A stretch of 64,000 nucleotides of DNA from Rebecca billardiae RCC1528 (GCA_965240325.2 OZ251225.1:3596001-3660000); one strand, 5' to 3'; positions 8,993-17,735 are shown, counted from the stretch's first letter. The notes: a model not told the origin generated them from the sequence alone. Numbers and translations: made by a program.

Positions 8993-9955
8993 TCATATCT
9001 GGTCCATGATCCAACTCGAAATGAGACAGCCCTTGGCCCGGTCGTCGACCTCGAGATCAGCAGCCCGGTAGCACTTGTCCGGATCCCAAGGGCACCCATG
9101 AGCCCTCAGCCACTGCAGCGCTTCCAGTTGGCCACCACGCGCGGCACAATAGCACGCGTCGCTGTCCCATGGACAGCCGTTCGTCACGGCCCATTGGAGC
9201 ATGTCCAAGTGGCCGTGTTGAGCACAGAATGCCGGCGTGTCCTCATCCCATGGGCACCCCTTTGACCGCGCCCAGCGGAGGAGCTCGAAGTGGCCGCCAA
9301 CGGCCGCCATCTTCGCGGTCTCGCGCGCCCAGGGCGCTCCGAGCGCGCGGAGCCACTTCAGGCAGTCGAGCTGGCCTCCAGCAGCTGCTGCATGCACGGT
9401 GCTGGCTGACACGATCTTGCTCTTGTTGCGCTTGAGCATCCAATCCAAGATGCGCACGTGACCTCCTCGGGCGGCGGCGCGGCAGCTGCGGTCGGTGATG
9501 CACATCACGCCTGCATCTTCGAGGTGAGCAAGGACCTCGAGCTGGCCACACGAGGCGGCACCGTCGCAGACCTCGTCCCAGTCGACGCTAGGCTTGTACG
9601 CGCTCACTTGGCTCTTCGCATGCATGAACATCACGGTGGACAAAGCGCCTCCCTTCGCAGCCACGGTGCACAGCTTGGTCTCGACCGTAGGCGTCCATAT
9701 CTCATACATCGTGCGGGGTCGATCGAGTGGCTTGAACTGCTTGAAGCTGGTCATGGCCCACTCGGCGCGCGCGGGAGTCTCGACCAGTGCGCGCATCGAC
9801 GTCTTCAGCTTGAGGCCAGCCTTCCAGCGCTTCACTCGCGCGCCCTGCAGAAAGTCACGGCAAACAAGGGAGAAGCTGAGAACGTCGTCGTCGCGGAGCC
9901 GCGCGGCGATCTCAGCCAGGGCATCGATGGGGAATGCGGGCTCAAGCTGCCACAT
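8993..9955 (-). CDS. F-box-like plus ankyrin-repeat protein (GCPWD-type repeats)
   Basis: N-terminal FPIDALAEIAARL...FSLVCRDF is F-box-like. Repeats include AARGGHVRILDW, AAAGGQLDCLKWLRALGAPW and AARGGQLEALQWLRAHGCPWD. Start at 9955 is inferred. Confidence 0.85.
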   Translation of the reverse strand: MWQLEPAFPIDALAEIAARLRDDDVLSFSLVCRDFLQGARVKRWKAGLKLKTSMRALVETPARAEWAMTSFKQFKPLDRPRTMYEIWTPTVETKLCTVAAKGGALSTVMFMHAKSQVSAYKPSVDWDEVCDGAASCGQLEVLAHLEDAGVMCITDRSCRAAARGGHVRILDWMLKRNKSKIVSASTVHAAAAGGQLDCLKWLRALGAPWARETAKMAAVGGHFELLRWARSKGCPWDEDTPAFCAQHGHLDMLQWAVTNGCPWDSDACYCAARGGQLEALQWLRAHGCPWDPDKCYRAADLEVDDRAKGCLISSWIMDQI

Positions 9956-10127
9956 CGTCCGCTCGTTGCGCGCGGGGCGTCGCCCAAAGCTGCTCACGCC
10001 TTCGCCGGCGAGCGGGTGGCGCGGGTCTCGCATCCGGATTTCATTTCGAGTCCGGAAATTGCCACCGGCCGGCGGCCGCGCAAGCTCCGTCGCCGCGCGC
10101 TCCCTGGTCGCGCGCGGCCGAGCGCGC

Positions 10128-10766
10128 ATGGTCCCGGCCCTCGCCGTCGTTGGCGCGGCGCGTCCGCTGCTATTGGCCTGGGGCGGCGTGTCTTCTCTGG
10201 CTGCCCGCCACCCACTGGCATTTGGCTCGGCCGTGACCGGGATCAAGACCGCCGCTGCCGATGTGCTCTCCCAGCGCGTTTTTGAGGAGCGGCCATGGGT
10301 TGATGTCGACGTGCGCCGCATTTTCATCTTCCTCGCGTTCGGCGTGCTCTACCTCGGGATGGTGCAGTACGCCATCCACGTCGTGGCATTCAGCAGGATC
10401 TTCCCCACGGCGGGCGCGTTCGTCGCGCAGCCCCTCTCGCAGAAGCTGAGGGATCGCAGCGGCCAGCGAGCCGTGCTTGGTCAGGTGCTGCTTGATCAGG
10501 GCTTGCACTGGCCACTCGTCGCACTGCCGGCGTTCTACGTGGTCAAAGGGATCGGCGAGGGCAACCTGCGCGAGTCTCTCAGCCGCTGCGTCGCCAATTG
10601 GCCCCAGGACGTCCTCGACTGCTGGAAGTGGTGGCTCCCTGCGATGACCTTCAACTTCTCCTTCTGCCCGATGGAGATGCGCGTGCCCTTCAATGCGCTC
10701 GTGAGCTTTGCGTACATGGCTACGCTCTCGTTCCGCCGAGGCGGGGCCGAGCAGCCCTCGCACTGA
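10128..10766 (+). CDS. Mpv17/PMP22 family membrane protein
   Basis: HPL...KTAAADVLSQ, D.RR...F, QVLLDQ.LHWP, W.WWLPA..FNFSFCP..MRVPF...VSF match the four-TM Mpv17/PMP22 pattern. Confidence 0.9.
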   Translation: MVPALAVVGAARPLLLAWGGVSSLAARHPLAFGSAVTGIKTAAADVLSQRVFEERPWVDVDVRRIFIFLAFGVLYLGMVQYAIHVVAFSRIFPTAGAFVAQPLSQKLRDRSGQRAVLGQVLLDQGLHWPLVALPAFYVVKGIGEGNLRESLSRCVANWPQDVLDCWKWWLPAMTFNFSFCPMEMRVPFNALVSFAYMATLSFRRGGAEQPSH

Positions 10767-11075: not shown

Positions 11076-11942
11076 CTACAGCGACGGCGCCCACGACTCG
11101 GGGTCGACATCGAGCATCGCGTCGTCGGGCGTCTGGTTGTAGTAGCGCACAGGGTCGACCCAGAGCTCCTGCTTGATGATTTCAGCGATGAGCAGCGAGT
11201 CCTGGTCACTTGCGACGCCAGACGCCTCGTCCATCACGTCGAACCACGAGAAGAAGGACGCCTCGTCGCCGCGCCGCCGCTTCCCGCCCTGCGCATTATC
11301 CGGCTCCATGGTGAGGTTCTTGCCCTCGCGCCACTGGATCGGGCTCGACGTGACGCACAGCGAGTTGTCAGTGTAGTGGAAGTCCTTGTGCAGCGTGCTG
11401 TTGTGGAAGAACGGGTTCTCGGCGAAGTGCATCTCGATGCGGTAGCCGGATTTGAGGTCGTCCGCCTCGATCACCTCGATCTGCCTCAGGTACTTGAGCG
11501 CCTCGCGATCGCGCTCCGTCAGGATCGAGTGCAGCACCGGGTGGTGAGAGATCTGCGGCCGTGGTGCCCGCGCGATTCGGCAAGCGCGCGCACAGCGCGC
11601 GGGGCGCGGGGTGAGGCCTGCACCACGCGGGCGCGGATCACGCAGAGCACCACCGTAGCGCGAGCACGGACGCCCCACGCCGCAGCCGCGCACCGCCTGC
11701 AGCCAAAAGTCTGGGATGCGCCCAAGCACCTCTGCGCGCCTGTGGTAGAGCGGCTTTCGCCTCTGGTTGAACTCCGCCTCGATCTCGAGCACGCGGTCGG
11801 CTGCCTCCTCGTTGAGCACCTCAAGCTCCTCCTGTATCCGGCCCAGATCCTCGAATGTGTGCTCCGGCGTCGCCGCCCCTCTACTGGACTCGGCGGCAGC
11901 GTCCTCTTCGACGCGCCTCGCGCTCTTGCTCGCCGACGCCAT
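11076..11942 (-). CDS. NAP/SET-family histone chaperone; intron 11553-11693
   Basis: RKPLY..R..V...IPDFW, F.ENPFF.N..L.K.F, PIQW..GK, SFFSWF, IAEIIK.ELW.DP.RYY. 141-nt GTGCGC...GCAG intron. Confidence 0.93.
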   Translation of the reverse strand: MASASKSARRVEEDAAAESSRGAATPEHTFEDLGRIQEELEVLNEEAADRVLEIEAEFNQRRKPLYHRRAEVLGRIPDFWLQAVRGCGVGRPCSRYGGALRDPRPRGAGLTPRPARCARACRIARAPRPQISHHPVLHSILTERDREALKYLRQIEVIEADDLKSGYRIEMHFAENPFFHNSTLHKDFHYTDNSLCVTSSPIQWREGKNLTMEPDNAQGGKRRRGDEASFFSWFDVMDEASGVASDQDSLLIAEIIKQELWVDPVRYYNQTPDDAMLDVDPESWAPSL

Positions 11943-12089
11943 CGTGGGGTGAACTCGACGAAATCTGAAATCTCCGCCGGCGCAGATTGAGCTCGCAGCC
12001 GGGTAATCTTCCACACAGCGCGGGCCAACGCGGGCCGCCGGCGGCGGGCGAGAGGGGGCGTCATCGCACCGTCGCGTGACGGTTGCGTC

Positions 12090-15000
12090 ATGCGCGGCGG
12101 CAAGGTGAAGCAGGGGCGGCGGCAGTCGGGCGCCTCGCCCACCCCGCCCGCGCTGGACGTGCTGCACATCAGCCCGTGCGCCCCCCGCGACCGCTCTCAG
12201 AGCGAGCCGTCCGTCGCCGCCGTCACCGCGCCGGCGCGCGCCGGGCTGCCGCCGCCATTCCCGTCGCTCGGCAGCTCGGGCGGCAGCGAGGGCTCGGTGA
12301 CGAGCGGGCGCGGCGGGGCGGAGCGCGCGCAGACGAGCGGGTCGAGCCGCAACGGAGGCGCGCACGACCTCGGCCCGGGCAGGCCGCCCCCGTCGCGCGC
12401 ACCGCCCACGGCCGACGCGCAGCGGCACCGGCGCAGCAGCTCGACCGGCTCGGCGTCCGCGTCGGCCGCGGCGCTCGCGAGCGGCGTGGGCAGCACGGCC
12501 GAGCGGCTCGCGTTCCTGTACGCGGCCCCGCTCGTCAACCAGGTCCGCGGCGGCACCGTCGACCTGCTCGACTTCAAGACGGAGCGCGACACGCTGCTGG
12601 AGACGCTGCGGCGCGCGGGCAAGCGCGTCGACATCTCGTGCGAGGTCGCGACCACGCGCAACCTGCGCAACGTGCTGCTCGACGGGTGCCGCGTGCTGCA
12701 CTACTCGGGGCACGGGTTCACGAGCCTGCTCCCGGGCGGCGCGGCGCACTCCGTCCTCGCCTTCGAGGACGGCGCGGGCGGCACGCACGCCCTCGAGGTC
12801 TCGGCGATCGAGCAGCTCGTCTCTGCGGGCGCGGAGCGCGGCGGCCGGCGCGGCACGCTCGAGGTGGCGTTCGTCTCGGCGTGCCACTCGGTGGAGGGCG
12901 GCGAGGCGTTCGTGAAGGCGGGCGTGCCGCACGTCATCGCCGTCCGCCGCGACGCGCGCGTGCAGGACCGCGCCGCCTGCCTCTTCGCCGAGGCGTTCTA
13001 CTACGCGCTGCTGCGCGCGAACCGCACGGTGCGGCAGGCGTTCGAGGTCGGCGTGCAGGCGGTCGCGCACGGCACGGGGATCGTGGCGGCGGGGGACGAG
13101 TCGCAGAAGTTCTTGCTGCTGCCCGAGTCGGACCCCGCCGGCGGCGCCGACCGGCACGACCGCACCATCTTCGACGCGGCGCTCGACGGCGCGCTCGTCG
13201 ACCTCTCGCGGCCGCTGCGCGCGCACAACCTGCCTGCCTTCTTCCCGCTGCAGTTCCTCGGCAGGCACGCGCTCTGGCAGCAGGCGGTGGCGGGGGTGCA
13301 GCAGAAGCGCGCGGTGGTGCTCGTCGGCGCGTCGGGGATCGGCAAGACCTCGCTCGCCATCGCCGCCGCGCACTACCTCCTCGAGCGCGACGTCTTCGCC
13401 GGCGGTGCGCGCGCGCGCGCGCGTCACGCGCCGCGCGCGCGCCGCCGAGCGGGCGTGTCGCGCCGCGCGCGCGCGCGCGCGCGAGGCGCCGCACCACTGC
13501 GTCGCGCGGCCCGCCGCCGCCGCCGCGCAGCGCCGATTCGCCCCGCGCGCCCCCTCGCGCGCCGCCGCCGCCCGCAGGCGTGCTGATGATCTCGCTGCAC
13601 GGCGTGAGCTCGCACGCGGCGCTGGTGCGCGCGGTCGGCCACGCGCTGCACGAGGCGACCGGCGGCCCGCGCGTGCGCTCGGCGTACCGCGGGATGGGCG
13701 CGCCGACGGACGCGGACGCGGTGGCGGCGCTGCTGCTGCCCGCGCTGCGCGAGCGCGCGGAGGAGGGCCGCCTCTGCCTCATCCTCGACGGCTGCGACGG
13801 CCTCGGCCTCCCGCTGGCCGCGCTCGCGTCGATCATCGAGCGGCTGCTGCACAAACTGCCCGAGCTGTCGATGCTGTGCACCTCGACGGAGCCGCTGGTG
13901 CTGGCGGGCGTGGCGCAGCGGCAGCTCACGATCCCGCCGATCCCCGCGCTCGACGCCGCGCGCCTCTTCGTCATGCTCTCGCCGCGCGGCCTCACGCACG
14001 CCGAGATTGGCTCCGACAGGCCTGAGCGGCTCGCCGCGGAGATGGCGGCACTCGTGCGCTGCCTCAAGCCGAGCCTTCCGGAGATCGAGCGCTTCACGGT
14101 GCAGCAGGCGGCGGGCGGGGACGGCGGCGGCGCGGGTGGGATCCGCGTGTGCCGCTGGAAGCTCGCAGACGCGCGCTCCGCCGAGATGTTCGCCGCGCAC
14201 CTGCAGGCCGCGGCCGACGGCACCGCGACCGCACCCGGCGGCGCGGCCGTCGCCGCCGCCGCCGCCGCGGCCGCCAACGGAGCAGGGCGCGACGCGGGCG
14301 CGGGCGCGGGCGCGGCGGCCGCGGCGGCGCCGGGCGCCGACGGCGGCGCGGGCGGCGCGAGCGCGGGCCGCGCGGGCTGCGCGCTCGCCTTCGAGGTGCG
14401 CGGCACCAGCGTGATCGCGCGCCTCTCGCACCTGCGCCTGCTCGCCGCGCATCGCGTCGTGCGCGCACTCGGCGGCTCGCCGCGCGCGATCGCGCTGGCC
14501 GTGCACGGCCTCGTGCACGACGACGGCAAGCCGAGGGCGCTGGACGAGTTCGGCGCGCTGCTCGAGGGCGCAGGCGTGGGCCTGCCCGAGCCCGAGCTCG
14601 CGCCGGGCGGCCGAATCGGCGGCGCGGCCCTCGGCGCCCACCCCAGCTCGCCGCCGCCGCCGCCCGAGCGCGCGCCCTCTGAGCGCACTCAGGTGATGCT
14701 TGAGGGGCTGCGCTCCACGCTGCAGCTGCCGCTCGCGGAGGAGGCGGCGGCGGCGGGCGGCGGCGGCGGCGGCGGTGGTGGCGCGGGGCTGGGTGCTGGC
14801 GCCGCCGCCGCCGGCAGCTCGCTCTCGGGCGAGGAGCGCCAGGCGGCGGCGGCGTTTGCGACCGCGGGGCTCGGCGCACACGGCGCGCCCCCTGGCGTGG
14901 TGGCCGCGGCGCGCTCGCCCGCGCCGAGCGGCGGCGGCGGGCGGCGCGGCGAGGAGCTGCCGCCCTCGCTCGAGATCGACGGCTCCGAGGTCGAGCTCGA

Positions 15001-16085
15001 CGAGTGGCTCGGCGGCGGCACGTTCGGCGCCGTCTTCGCCGGCACGTACGCCGGCACGCGCGTCGCAGTGAAGCAGTTCTTCGCGCGCACCGGCTCGCAC
15101 AAAGCGTTTGCACGCGAGGCCAACGTGCTGTGTCACCTGCGGCACCCGAACGTGGTGCAGCTGCTCAAGGTGTGCCGCACGGGCGGGAAGGGGCTGCTCA
15201 TCGTCACCGAGTTCTTCCCGCGCTCGCTCTTCACCTACCTGCACGAGTCGACCGAGCCCGCCGACGGCGCGCGCGAGGGCGCGGCGCCTGAGCTGCTGCC
15301 GCGCGGCGCTGTGCTTCGGCTGTCGCGCGACATCGCGTGCGGCCTGCTGTACCTGCACACGTTCAAGCCGGCCGTGCTGCACCGCAACCTCAAGTCGCAG
15401 AACCTGATGCTCGACGACAGTAGGCGCGTGAAGGTCGCCGACTTCGGTGCGCGCTCGCTCTGCGCCGCGCGGCGCGCCGCGCGCGCGCGCGTGCGGCCGC
15501 GCGCCCGCCGCCGTGCGCGCCTGACTCGCACGACGCCGCCGCGCCTGACTCGCACGACGCCGCCGCGCCGCGCGCGCCGCCGCGCGCGCTCGGCGCCGCC
15601 GCGGCCGGGCAGGCTGGTCGCGCTTCAAGGACGGCAAGGGCGGCAGCGGCCCCGGCACGTTCTTCCACGGGTGGCAGTGGGTCGCCCCCGAGATCCTGTC
15701 CAGCCGGCCGTACACCGAGAAGGCCGACGTGTACTCCTTCGCCATGATCATGTGGGAGATCCAGACGCGCCGGCTGCCCTTCAAAGGGATGAACCCCGTG
15801 CAGATCGGGCTGGCGGTGCGCGAGCAGAAGCTCAGGCCGGACATCCCGGCGGACTGCTCGGCGAGGCACGCGCAGCTGATGCAGCAGTGCTGGCACGAGG
15901 AGCCCGACCACCGGCCAGACTTTGCCGCGATCCTCGCCGTGCTCAACGAGCTGCACGAGGAGGAGGCGGCCGCTGTGGCCGCGGGTGCTGGCGGCGGCAG
16001 CGGCGCCGGCCTGCGTGGCGCCCCGACGGGCGACAGCATCGATGGCGGCGAGGCGGCGGCGAGCGGAGATGCCGCCAGAAGGTGA
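12090..16085 (+). CDS. CHAT (caspase-like) protease + STAND/NB-ARC-like NTPase + TKL-type pseudokinase, 1218 aa; exons 12090-13404, 13578-15446, 15613-16085
   Basis: CHAT: LHYSGHG, LAFED, AFVSACHS, FAEAFYYAL. STAND: FLGR, GASGIGKT, CLILDGCD, LCTS, LGGSPRAI. Kinase: GGGTFG, VAVK, HRNLKSQN, DFG, WVAPE, DVYSF, CW...P..RP. Removing two GT-AG introns gives one 3657-nt frame. Confidence 0.9.
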
Positions 16086-16322
16086 CATCATCATATTTGG
16101 CAGTGATGCATGTGACCTCGCGTCCGGTCAGTTCTCGCGTCACGCGTTAGCCAGTACCGAGTACGGACTACGGACGTCAACAACTTGGCGGCGACGGCGA
16201 CATCAGTGCCCGCGGTAGTTAGCGCAGCCCAATTACGACCTAATACACCGTACTGTAAGCCAATACAGAAGCAGTTTTTAAAACACCGCAAACACGATCC
16301 GAAGTTGAGCACCTTGAGCAGC

Positions 16323-17735
16323 ATGGCCCCCGGCGATGCCCGTCTCCTCGACGGGCGCGGCATCGCCACGCCGATGCTCAGGCTTACGGGGGCGATCTCG
16401 GGCAACTATGTCGCGCACAGCCCCGCTTGGCGGTCCGCGCAGATCGTGTCGCGCACGCTGCTCTTCGCGCCGAGCGCGCTGATGCTCGTGCAATTTGCGC
16501 TCGATTCGTCCATGGGCGCCATCTTCTCGCCTCTGCTCATCGTGGTGGGTGCGGTGGTCTCGGCTACGAACGCCGCCGCAGTCATCGTCGCAAGTATGCG
16601 CGACCACGAGCCCGCGAGCACCGAGCTGCTGGGCCGCGCCGTCGAGGCGCACGGCGCGCGGCAGGTGTGGCTGCGCGACACGCCGGCCTTGCTCGTCCTG
16701 CTCGTCACGCTCGGGGTGCTCGTGTTCAACCTGGCCGCGCAGGTGGCCGAGCCCTCATCGCACGTGCCGTCCGGCGCCCGCGGATCCATGGCGCAGCGCG
16801 TCGTCCGCCACGTGAGCGGCTCGCTCCTCACGCTCGCCTTTGGCGTGCTCATCGCCGGCACCGTGAACGTGCTGCTGCGGCTCGGCTGGTGGATGGGCGC
16901 GTCCATCAAGGCGCTGCATGCGTTCGGCGAGGAGGTGCGCGAGGTCGCGGGCATGCGCGCGCACGCGGGTGCGCCGCCGCCGCCGCCGGCCGGCCGCGCC
17001 GCGCGGCACGGTGGCAGCGCGCGCACGGCGCCACGAGCCCCCGCGCCCGCTGACCCGGAGGCGGTCGCAGACGAGGCGAGCGAGCGGCTGCAGAGCGCAT
17101 ACGCGGCGGCGCGAGAGGTGACCGCGCGGATGAACGAGACGTTCGAGGGGCCCCTCTCCGCGCTGTTCCTCTGCAACGTCTTCTGGGTCCTCGTCTTCGC
17201 GCGTGGCCTGTGGAGCGACGACACGCGGCTGCGCTCCTGGGAGGCGGTCCTAGACTTCTCGAGCTCGGCCACGCTCGCCGTGCTCGCCCTCGTCTGGAGC
17301 GCGCGCGTGGGCGACGTGTGGACGGCGGTGCGGCACGAGGCGGCCGACCCCGAGTCCTCCCTCGCGCTGGTGCGCGTGCTCGGCGCGCACCGCTTCGACG
17401 CCTTCTCGCACGCGCTCGAGCACACGCACGTGGGCTTCCAGGTGTGCCACGTGACGATGACCTCGTTCGCAACCGCGCGCTTTCTGTTTGGGCTCACGCT
17501 CACGGTCGGGCTGGCGGCGCTGCACGCGTGGCACGAGCACCACCGCGAGCACACGCTCGCGCACGAGATCCTCAGCGGGCTCGACGAGGGCGGTATGCTC
17601 GTGGAGGACAGCAGCGGCGCCGGCGATACGGACGTGGCCACAGGCCACGGCAGTGCCCCGGGGGATCTCTCGTCGGCGCACCCACGGCATCCACATCATC
17701 AGCATGCGCGTCGGCTCATGGCGCTAATCGCCTAA
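16323..17735 (+). CDS. Multi-pass membrane protein, gustatory-receptor-like / 7TM ion channel candidate
   Basis: About seven hydrophobic segments and a long loop between TM4 and TM5. Y...REVTARMNETF leads into TM5, SARV ends TM6, and GFQV..VTMT precedes the last helix. Confidence 0.6.
   Translation: MAPGDARLLDGRGIATPMLRLTGAISGNYVAHSPAWRSAQIVSRTLLFAPSALMLVQFALDSSMGAIFSPLLIVVGAVVSATNAAAVIVASMRDHEPASTELLGRAVEAHGARQVWLRDTPALLVLLVTLGVLVFNLAAQVAEPSSHVPSGARGSMAQRVVRHVSGSLLTLAFGVLIAGTVNVLLRLGWWMGASIKALHAFGEEVREVAGMRAHAGAPPPPPAGRAARHGGSARTAPRAPAPADPEAVADEASERLQSAYAAAREVTARMNETFEGPLSALFLCNVFWVLVFARGLWSDDTRLRSWEAVLDFSSSATLAVLALVWSARVGDVWTAVRHEAADPESSLALVRVLGAHRFDAFSHALEHTHVGFQVCHVTMTSFATARFLFGLTLTVGLAALHAWHEHHREHTLAHEILSGLDEGGMLVEDSSGAGDTDVATGHGSAPGDLSSAHPRHPHHQHARRLMALIA

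Follow-up and report, generated by a model that had tools for sequence, protein, structure and literature searches.

A predicted protein joining a CHAT protease, a STAND-derived NTPase and a pseudokinase in Rebecca billardiae RCC1528

Gene structure and domain layout

The 64,000-nt stretch analysed here (hereafter, the window) comes from the genome of Rebecca billardiae RCC1528 (GCA_965240325.2 OZ251225.1:3596001-3660000) and contains, on its plus strand, a gene predicted to encode a caspase-like CHAT protease, a P-loop nucleoside triphosphatase (NTPase) related to STAND proteins and a C-terminal kinase fold in one polypeptide. A preliminary description, made from the sequence, had proposed this layout and a role in immunity or cell death. 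The features of the gene, with positions counted from the first nucleotide of the window and residues from the predicted start, are as follows.

12090-13404, plus strand: exon 1, residues 1-438 and the first base of G439 (open reading frame, ATG, GT donor at 13405)
12090-12464, plus strand: N-terminal extension of about 125 residues, of low complexity and rich in Ser, Gly, Pro and Arg, with the codon-phase signal in third-position GC (GC3) present
12501-13121, plus strand: CHAT caspase-like protease domain, residues ~138-344 (Pfam PF12770, AlphaFold2, Foldseek, profile)
12711-12713, plus strand: predicted catalytic His208, in HYSGHG (invariant column H88 of alignment A1)
12882-12884, plus strand: predicted catalytic Cys265, in SACHS (invariant column C145 of alignment A1)
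13245-13404, plus strand: start of the NTPase, with FLGR (G391, R392) and Walker A GASGIGKT at 13326-13349 (A1 columns, partial Pfam matches)
13405-13577, plus strand: intron 1, 173 nt, GT-AG, 90% GC, phase 1
13578-15446, plus strand: exon 2, residues 439-1062, a single open frame
13578-14572, plus strand: NTPase core and helical lid, residues 439-770 (AlphaFold2, VIA-align, alignment)
14096-14425, plus strand: clade-specific α/β insert inside the lid, residues ~612-721 (alignment, AlphaFold2)
14573-14974, plus strand: linker, residues ~771-904, mostly low-complexity sequence of Ala, Gly and Pro, in which a single helix, SERTQ..LEGLRSTLQL, is conserved
14975-15446, plus strand: kinase N-lobe and catalytic loop (PF07714, E 1.6e-24)
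15447-15612, plus strand: intron 2, 166 nt, GT-AG, 89% GC, phase 1, immediately 3′ of DFG
15613-16085, plus strand: exon 3, kinase C-lobe to ~15953, then an Ala/Gly-rich tail and the stop codon at 16083-16085

The three exons join into a coding sequence of 3,657 nt (1,218 codons and a stop). Exon 1 carries the disordered N-terminus, the CHAT domain, the FLGR motif and Walker A, while exon 2 carries the remaining NTPase, the linker and the kinase N-lobe through DFG. Three reading frames hold the CHAT, NTPase and kinase domains, and, given a GC content of 72–82%, the region also contains many overlapping chance open reading frames. GC amounts to 96% overall at third codon positions, compared with 57% at second ones. 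The high-GC phase moves from 2 to 1 and back, shifting exactly at both introns, and is already present from 12090, where the only in-frame ATG 5′ of the CHAT domain is found. Third-position GC in the coding phase is at least 0.93 from 12060 to 13379 in exon 1, and the GC3 phase of exon 2 is constant over 13620-15419. Across the junction left by intron 1 (ERDVFAGG/VLMISL), the protein aligns without gaps to transcript-derived protist proteins from MMETSP (P0024) and EukProt (P0033 and P0061), as well as to bacterial homologues, which have no introns. The junction left by intron 2, DFG/WSRFK...FFHGWQWVAPEIL, agrees with P0181, a member of the same clade that is intronless at that site.

Splicing was deduced from this comparative and codon-phase evidence. 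For Pfam and AlphaFold the exons were analysed separately, with the one-frame clade-mate P0181 serving as a stand-in for the full chain. The data point to one three-exon gene, with a soluble CHAT-NTPase-kinase protein of 1,218 residues as its predicted product. The preliminary description had likewise proposed a single gene with the domains in this order, and its proposal is borne out by the exon shared between NTPase and kinase, by the codon phase and by an order conserved in at least six lineages (see below).

Introns 1 and 2 are (CG)n-rich and ~73% identical to each other, and they resemble further low-complexity GC stretches of the window (e.g. at ~21.1-22.9 kb); they may belong to a kind of intron that recurs in this genome. 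The GC content of 12000-16000 is 76–78%, compared with a window average of ~67%, and the encoded protein contains 17% Ala and 13% Gly.

The CHAT protease domain

The CHAT domain scores 50.3 bits against PF12770, for which the Pfam cutoff is 24 (E 2.9e-13). Alignment A1 comprises 45 related sequences, all of which keep the His208 and Cys265 columns. In the AlphaFold2 model of residues 121-438, with a mean predicted local distance difference test score (pLDDT) of 90.7, the domain is predicted to adopt the caspase/hemoglobinase α/β fold (caspase-fold clan CD). The top Foldseek match of this model in the PDB is 8tl0, a SAVED-CHAT filament in its activated form (E 7e-10), followed by caspase-9, MALT1, Csx29, CED-3 and gingipain, and a profile of the family also retrieves the CHAT domain of 8tl0 by sequence (E 1.2e-15). 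We therefore regard the domain as a predicted cysteine protease whose His/Cys dyad is intact, the two residues lying where the preliminary description had placed them. The N-terminal extension is not conserved in the orthologues, and the alignment to two of them (L001 and L002, described below) starts only at residue ~139.

The NTPase module

The FLGR motif precedes Walker A, and an hhGR motif ahead of the P-loop is, as Leipe et al. reportedly noted in 2004, typical of STAND NTPases. Columns F269/G271/R272 and G296/G298/K299 of A1 are invariant or nearly so. On exon 2, Walker B (LILDGCD) contributes D509 (13787-13789) and D512, the sensor-1 position is occupied by T542 (13886-13888), and the GxP motif comprises G738-P740 (GSP, 14474-14482), with GSPRAI aligning to the GHP/GNP of relatives in a confidently modelled helix. 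Walker A, Walker B and GxP, which the preliminary description had listed, are all present. Its sensor-1 motif, LCTS, was correctly positioned as well, although the canonical arginine is missing there: the window protein has TST instead of TSR. Thr or Ser occupies this site in all members of the kinase-bearing clade, whereas bacterial and TPR-containing relatives have Arg (TSR).

Pfam matches to the NTPase are weak or absent in the window protein because intron 1 splits the domain. The P-loop fragment on exon 1 reaches 26.2 bits with nSTAND1 (cutoff 27.1) and also gives partial matches to nSTAND3 and AAA_16, and the exon-2 part alone matched no Pfam NTPase model. The one-frame NTPase of P0181 passes the thresholds of NACHT (28.9 > 26.7), nSTAND1 (30.4 > 27.1) and AAA_16 (33.5 > 32.6). 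The relatives found by phmmer align across the entire NTPase and themselves pass the thresholds of NACHT, NB-ARC or nSTAND1.

The AlphaFold2 model of residues 440-846 has a pLDDT of 80.5. Compared with the whole PDB by VIA-align, it matches MalT (Z 9.2), the STAND-TPR protein PH0952 (8.6) and Paby2304 (8.0) best, with further matches to Cdc6/Orc, Avs3 (7.0), Apaf-1 (6.3), ZAR1 (6.3) and CED-4 (6.2); the P-loop strand, encoded on the other exon, is missing from the model, which keeps the Z values moderate. ESM Atlas clusters matching the model carry NACHT, NB-ARC or HTH_77-TPR families, and Foldseek returned only weak matches with it. Neither the model nor the alignment contains a winged-helix domain (WHD) after the lid, where a linker with one helix is found instead, whereas bacterial relatives run on past the lid into a WHD (‘LLGLLPAG’) and TPR repeats. 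We conclude that the module is probably a STAND-derived P-loop NTPase consisting of a core and a helical lid, as judged by its sequence and predicted fold. It falls short of a complete canonical STAND module, given that the sensor-1 Arg is replaced by Thr and the WHD is missing; the motifs, the lid and the nearest folds agree with the STAND assignment of the preliminary description, and these two elements depart from it.

The insert inside the lid measures ~80–110 residues and is modelled at high pLDDT as β-β-α-α...β-β, broken by an Ala/Gly-rich disordered loop. It is common only to the kinase-bearing clade and to the Prymnesium protein P0012, and is absent from the bacterial TPR relatives. 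A fold search with the insert gave only weak matches (Z 5–6), to HAD cap domains.

The kinase domain

No LRR or other repeat domain was detected in the Pfam scan of the window protein, in which a kinase domain is found instead. Owing to this absence of repeats, the protein falls outside the NLR family in the strict sense. The kinase piece on exon 3 (C-lobe) also matches PF07714 (PK_Tyr_Ser-Thr; E 1.5e-22), and the closest PDB sequences, TNNI3K and CTR1, place the domain in the TKL group. The main sites are GGGTFG, K937 (15071-15073), N1042 of HRN (15386-15388) and D1060 of DFG (15440-15442). The whole ATP-binding set is present and conserved (GGGTFG, VAVK, the αC Glu in REA, the Asn of KSQN, and DFG), as is APE.

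The catalytic Asp of HRD is replaced by Asn in the window protein and in every clade member examined, which makes the domain a pseudokinase by the bioinformatic, sequence-based definition (PMC4718504). The same replacement of Asp by Asn is found in HER3 and JAK JH2, which bind ATP and signal by allostery (PMC4718504). The fold is thus predicted to be catalytically disabled, yet competent to bind ATP, and both the pseudokinase reading and the TKL affinity of the preliminary description are upheld.

Conservation of the fusion

Two metagenome contigs, L001 (JGI 3300036591) and L002 (JGI 3300038657), carry orthologues of the gene with an identical domain order and both introns shared. Each also has an additional intron in the kinase C-lobe, after ...WVAPEIL (3022-3435 in L001 and 4895-5384 in L002), which the window gene lacks, indicating intron gain or loss within the clade. 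A fourth, partial orthologue is P0170, from Logan. The exon-1 open reading frame itself is present in a Logan assembly of run ERR14847148. P0181, from a TARA scaffold with content identical to L011, is a 1,002-residue open reading frame with CHAT at 14-188, the NTPase at 242-447 and the kinase at 744-986, and L008/L009 and L012 are additional full-length members. In L008, a short intron with in-frame stops (2640-2720) lies inside the stretch that codes for the catalytic motif HYSGHG, which marks this locus as eukaryotic.

The domain order, the catalytic dyad, Walker A, GxP, HRN, DFG and APE are all kept in L001, L002, P0170, P0181/L011, P0182, L008/L009 and L012. Layout and HRN thus appear to be conserved in at least six marine or environmental eukaryote lineages, and the search for the architecture that had been suggested earlier does recover the CHAT-NTPase-kinase order among relatives. 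Since one of the search patterns was HRNLK[ST]QN, the conservation of HRN in the metagenome loci is partly circular; the independent evidence comes from L001, L002, P0170 and P0181, which were retrieved via other regions. Outside the clade, the nearest kinases among the proteins searched (745–2,371 residues) are 35–37% identical.

Identity among the orthologues is 50–76% per domain across several lineages. The ratios of nonsynonymous to synonymous substitution (dN/dS, Nei-Gojobori) against L001 and L002 are 0.19–0.32 for the kinase, 0.21–0.37 for CHAT, 0.42–0.61 for the NTPase and 0.64–0.95 for the linker, values to be read only relative to one another because 96% GC3 compresses dS. On that relative scale, constraint is strongest in the kinase and CHAT domains, and the linker is near neutral.

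The wider CHAT-NTPase family

An exhaustive phmmer search with the CHAT and P-loop region yielded 1,981 cluster representatives at E ≤ 1e-3, 172 of them at ≤ 1e-30. Among the best 150 matches, about 110 show a homologous NTPase after CHAT, and the sole kinase is found on P0001, the protein called on L001. Named members of the family come from Prymnesium parvum, Amorphochlora amoebiformis and Platysulcus tardus, and CHAT proteins of Albugo and Aphanomyces are related more distantly. P. parvum supplies the nearest named relatives of the CHAT-NTPase module, no more than a hint at an affinity to haptophytes. Bacterial members occur in metagenome-assembled genomes of Cloacimonetes (P0021) and Thermoanaerobaculia (P0034 and P0179), where they have a CHAT-NB-ARC-TPR organization and are 42–46% identical to the CHAT and P-loop region of the window protein. 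The spread across bacteria and unrelated protists is patchy, at 41–48% identity, and accompanied by extensive domain shuffling.

According to Pfam, the C-terminal slot of these proteins is mostly occupied by TPR and elsewhere by two cNMP-binding domains, SH2 or nothing recognizable; other relatives contain LRR or FHA domains, and P0190 has SPRY and SAM N-terminal of CHAT. The gene of the window appears to derive from this large family, in which the slot usually holds TPR repeats, and in it a kinase replaces the usual sensor, as had been proposed at the outset. Among P0018, P0187, P0188, P0192 and P0083 there are several protist CHAT-NACHT relatives with a terminal SH2 and oomycete CHAT proteins with FHA, and one haptophyte CHAT relative has cNMP-binding domains. 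Given these SH2, FHA and cNMP-binding partners, modules that read phosphorylation or second messengers recur in the family.

In a maximum likelihood tree of the CHAT and P-loop region, the kinase-bearing sequences fall into a single clade (support 100/99), the earliest branch of which is the Prymnesium cNMP-binding protein. Some members of the clade (L003 and L004) have no detectable kinase. We found no relative of the CHAT-P-loop module among viral contigs, PADLOC matched generic kinase models but no CHAT-STAND defence model, and no paralogue of the CHAT gene was detected within the 64-kb window.

Genomic neighbourhood

The genes and repeats near the CHAT gene, or elsewhere in the window, are the following.

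8993-10327, minus strand: ankyrin-repeat open reading frame (Ank_4, E 2.5e-16) that also matches F-box weakly (E 5.5e-3)
10200-10766, plus strand: exon of an Mpv17/PMP22 family membrane protein (Pfam E 5e-10)
11076-11942, minus strand: two-exon gene for a NAP/SET-type nucleosome assembly protein (Pfam NAP, E 5e-22), head-to-head with the CHAT gene
16185-17735, plus strand: open reading frame of 516 residues directly 3′ of the CHAT gene, without a Pfam match
~36.8-52.5 kb: identical 55-nt match pairs every ~3.92 kb, found by BLAST of intron 2 (36796/37205, 40719/41128, 44642/45051, 48565/48974, 52488...)

The ATG of the NAP gene, at 11942, lies only 147 bp from that of the CHAT gene at 12090, a spacing that suggests one bidirectional promoter for both genes. 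The recurrence of the 55-nt pairs at ~3.92 kb indicates a tandem array of ~3.9-kb units. No Rfam family was matched.

Proposed function and alternatives

Given that the C-terminal slot of the CHAT-NTPase family holds ligand or peptide binders, the most economical reading is that the pseudokinase would serve as an input or regulatory domain. On balance, we consider it slightly more likely than not that the protein is an NLR-like signal-activated protease in which the pseudokinase acts as sensor or regulator. The nucleotide-binding pseudokinase, in that position, would hold the NTPase off until a partner kinase, a pathogen effector, phosphorylation or nucleotide occupancy altered its conformation. 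Such a change would permit the ATP-dependent self-association of the NTPase modules, which would in turn cluster the CHAT domains and switch on the cleavage of downstream substrates, with a programme of stress response, defence or cell death as the likeliest output. We infer both the immune or cell-death role and the ligand-driven oligomerization, as the preliminary description had done. The oligomerization step is modelled on caspase-9 at Apaf-1 and on SAVED-CHAT, which is activated by filament formation (10.1101/2023.06.23.546230).

Several considerations weigh against this interpretation. The lock that normally keeps STAND proteins ADP-bound is provided by a winged-helix domain and the sensor-1 Arg, and since the window protein has neither, the on/off logic of NLRs may not apply as written. 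As far as the sequence allows us to judge, the usual ADP-locked autoinhibition of Apaf-1 and plant NLRs would be unable to operate here; the locking role may have passed to the pseudokinase or to the lid insert, or the NTPase may resemble a simple AAA+ assembly unit. In its degree of conservation the pseudokinase equals the protease, and it is present once per contig, unlike fast-diversifying immune sensors. No gasdermin-like or other evident substrate gene was found near the CHAT gene, and the search of viral contigs returned no viral homologue. The dN/dS values, moreover, are unreliable at 96% GC3.

It is also conceivable, though in our judgement unlikely, that the kinase fold is an output or scaffold rather than an input, being weakly active or allosteric and acting on a second TKL kinase by recruitment or activation, in the manner of HER3 with EGFR/HER2. 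Another part, such as the lid insert or the disordered N-terminus, would then do the sensing, and the protein would be a dual-output hub for proteolysis and kinase signalling. The retention of every ATP-binding residue in a domain under strong constraint is consistent with such a role, as is the weak activity and allosteric action that HER3 retains with the same Asp-to-Asn change (PMC4718504); the conserved and confidently folded lid insert, shared with the cNMP-binding Prymnesium relative, would offer a place for the sensor. However, the typical occupants of the slot (TPR, SH2 and cNMP-binding domains) argue for an input role, and the searched proteins of 745–2,371 residues include no candidate for a partner paralogue, the closest outside kinases being just 35–37% identical.

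A further reading, to which we assign an equally small weight, is that of a conserved regulatory protease of normal physiology, whose NTPase and pseudokinase would be ordinary regulatory domains and which would act, for instance, in the cell cycle, a life-cycle transition or nutrient stress. The identity of 50–76% per domain across lineages, the low dN/dS in CHAT and kinase and the head-to-head arrangement, at 147 bp, with a histone-chaperone gene of the NAP type are all compatible with it, and eukaryotes have no defence-island context. Against it stand the features of the parent family, since a patchy spread over bacteria and protists at 41–48% identity and domain shuffling are hallmarks of conflict systems, and the defence or cell-death functions of those bacterial and fungal CHAT- or caspase-STAND relatives that have been characterized (PMC13581612, PMC12881547).

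More speculatively, and with a probability that we place well below even, the TKL domain, conserved and ATP-binding yet dead as a catalyst, could be an integrated bait. It would mimic a host kinase that is hit by effectors of giant viruses or bacteria, and its modification would free a nucleotide-binding oligomerization domain (NOD) pared down by the lack of the WHD and the sensor-1 Arg, which would then polymerize and fire the fused protease. If so, the protein would be a single-chain ‘guard-apoptosome’ for infection-triggered cell death in marine phytoplankton, and part of a large undescribed protist CHAT-NOD repertoire that reads phospho-signalling via kinase, SH2, FHA and cNMP domains.

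Finally, an annotation artefact, in which gene prediction wrongly joined a CHAT-NTPase gene to an adjacent, separate kinase gene, is very unlikely: long open frames do arise frequently by chance at 75–80% GC, but the NTPase, the linker and the kinase N-lobe are encoded on a single exon over which the codon-phase signal runs unbroken, P0181/L011 and L012 hold CHAT, NTPase and kinase within a single reading frame, and the domain order is kept in at least six lineages.

Implications

Caspase-like activity and virus-triggered cell death have long been seen in marine phytoplankton, with their molecular basis unexplained. The CHAT gene and its family provide concrete, testable candidates for this process. 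If the protein is the NLR-like protease with a pseudokinase sensor that we favour, it would unite a sensor position, an ATP switch and a caspase-fold executioner in one chain that can be mutated at Cys265, Lys419 and Asn1042. CHAT-NOD proteins, hitherto discussed for bacteria and fungi, form a large family in diverse protists, 41–48% identical to the bacterial members, in which phospho-signalling modules can stand in for the repeat sensor. With its conserved HRN pseudokinase in the sensor slot and the WHD lock lost, the protein amounts to a natural experiment on the control of the NOD switch.

Comparison with known systems

Bacterial orthologues of Apaf-1 carry a caspase-like effector on a STAND NTPase (PMC13581612), and fungal CHAT-NLRs control gasdermins (PMC12881547). 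The CHAT- and caspase-STAND proteins of bacteria and fungi have the same N-terminal caspase-clan protease, joined directly to a P-loop NOD. Compared with them, the window protein has a pseudokinase in place of the C-terminal TPR or WD40 repeats, has lost the WHD and the sensor-1 Arg and contains the α/β lid insert. A linked gasdermin-like gene could not be seen at its locus.

The best match of the predicted protease, both by structure and by sequence, is SAVED-CHAT (PDB 8tl0), from a type III-B CRISPR/CBASS module of Haliangium, which shows that ligand-driven oligomerization can activate a CHAT protease. It differs in having a SAVED sensor that binds cA3 and neither an NTPase nor a kinase, and identity is ~22%. 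In the apoptosomes of Apaf-1 with caspase-9 and of CED-4 with CED-3, a NOD whose oligomerization depends on NTP activates, through proximity, a protease of the caspase fold. The window protein, in contrast, has the protease in the same chain, without CARD recruitment, and has no WD40 sensor and no WHD/HD2.

In plants, ZAR1 acts with the pseudokinases RKS1 and ZED1, and barley Rpg5 is an NB-LRR-kinase protein. These and the kinase-NLRs of P. patens resemble the window protein in coupling a kinase fold to a NOD switch, with a pseudokinase as a sensing or decoy element, but they keep LRR and a full NB-ARC and have CC or TIR effectors instead of a protease. Kinase-NLR fusions are also known from plants including P. 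patens (PMC7145615); the P. patens proteins have the kinase at the N-terminus, rather than at the C-terminus as in the window protein, and we see no evidence for common descent of any of these plant proteins with it. HER3 and JAK JH2 share the HRN motif and the retained ATP-binding residues, although they belong to other kinase families, whereas the window domain is of the TKL type and, unlike HER3, keeps the αC Glu.

The open-access papers and preprints that we searched describe neither a CHAT-NOD-pseudokinase protein nor the protist CHAT-NOD family as such, in line with the preliminary description, which knew of no characterized eukaryotic protein with this layout. Considering that CHAT- or caspase-STAND proteins and kinase-NLR fusions are both known, the predicted protein would represent a new combination rather than a new principle.

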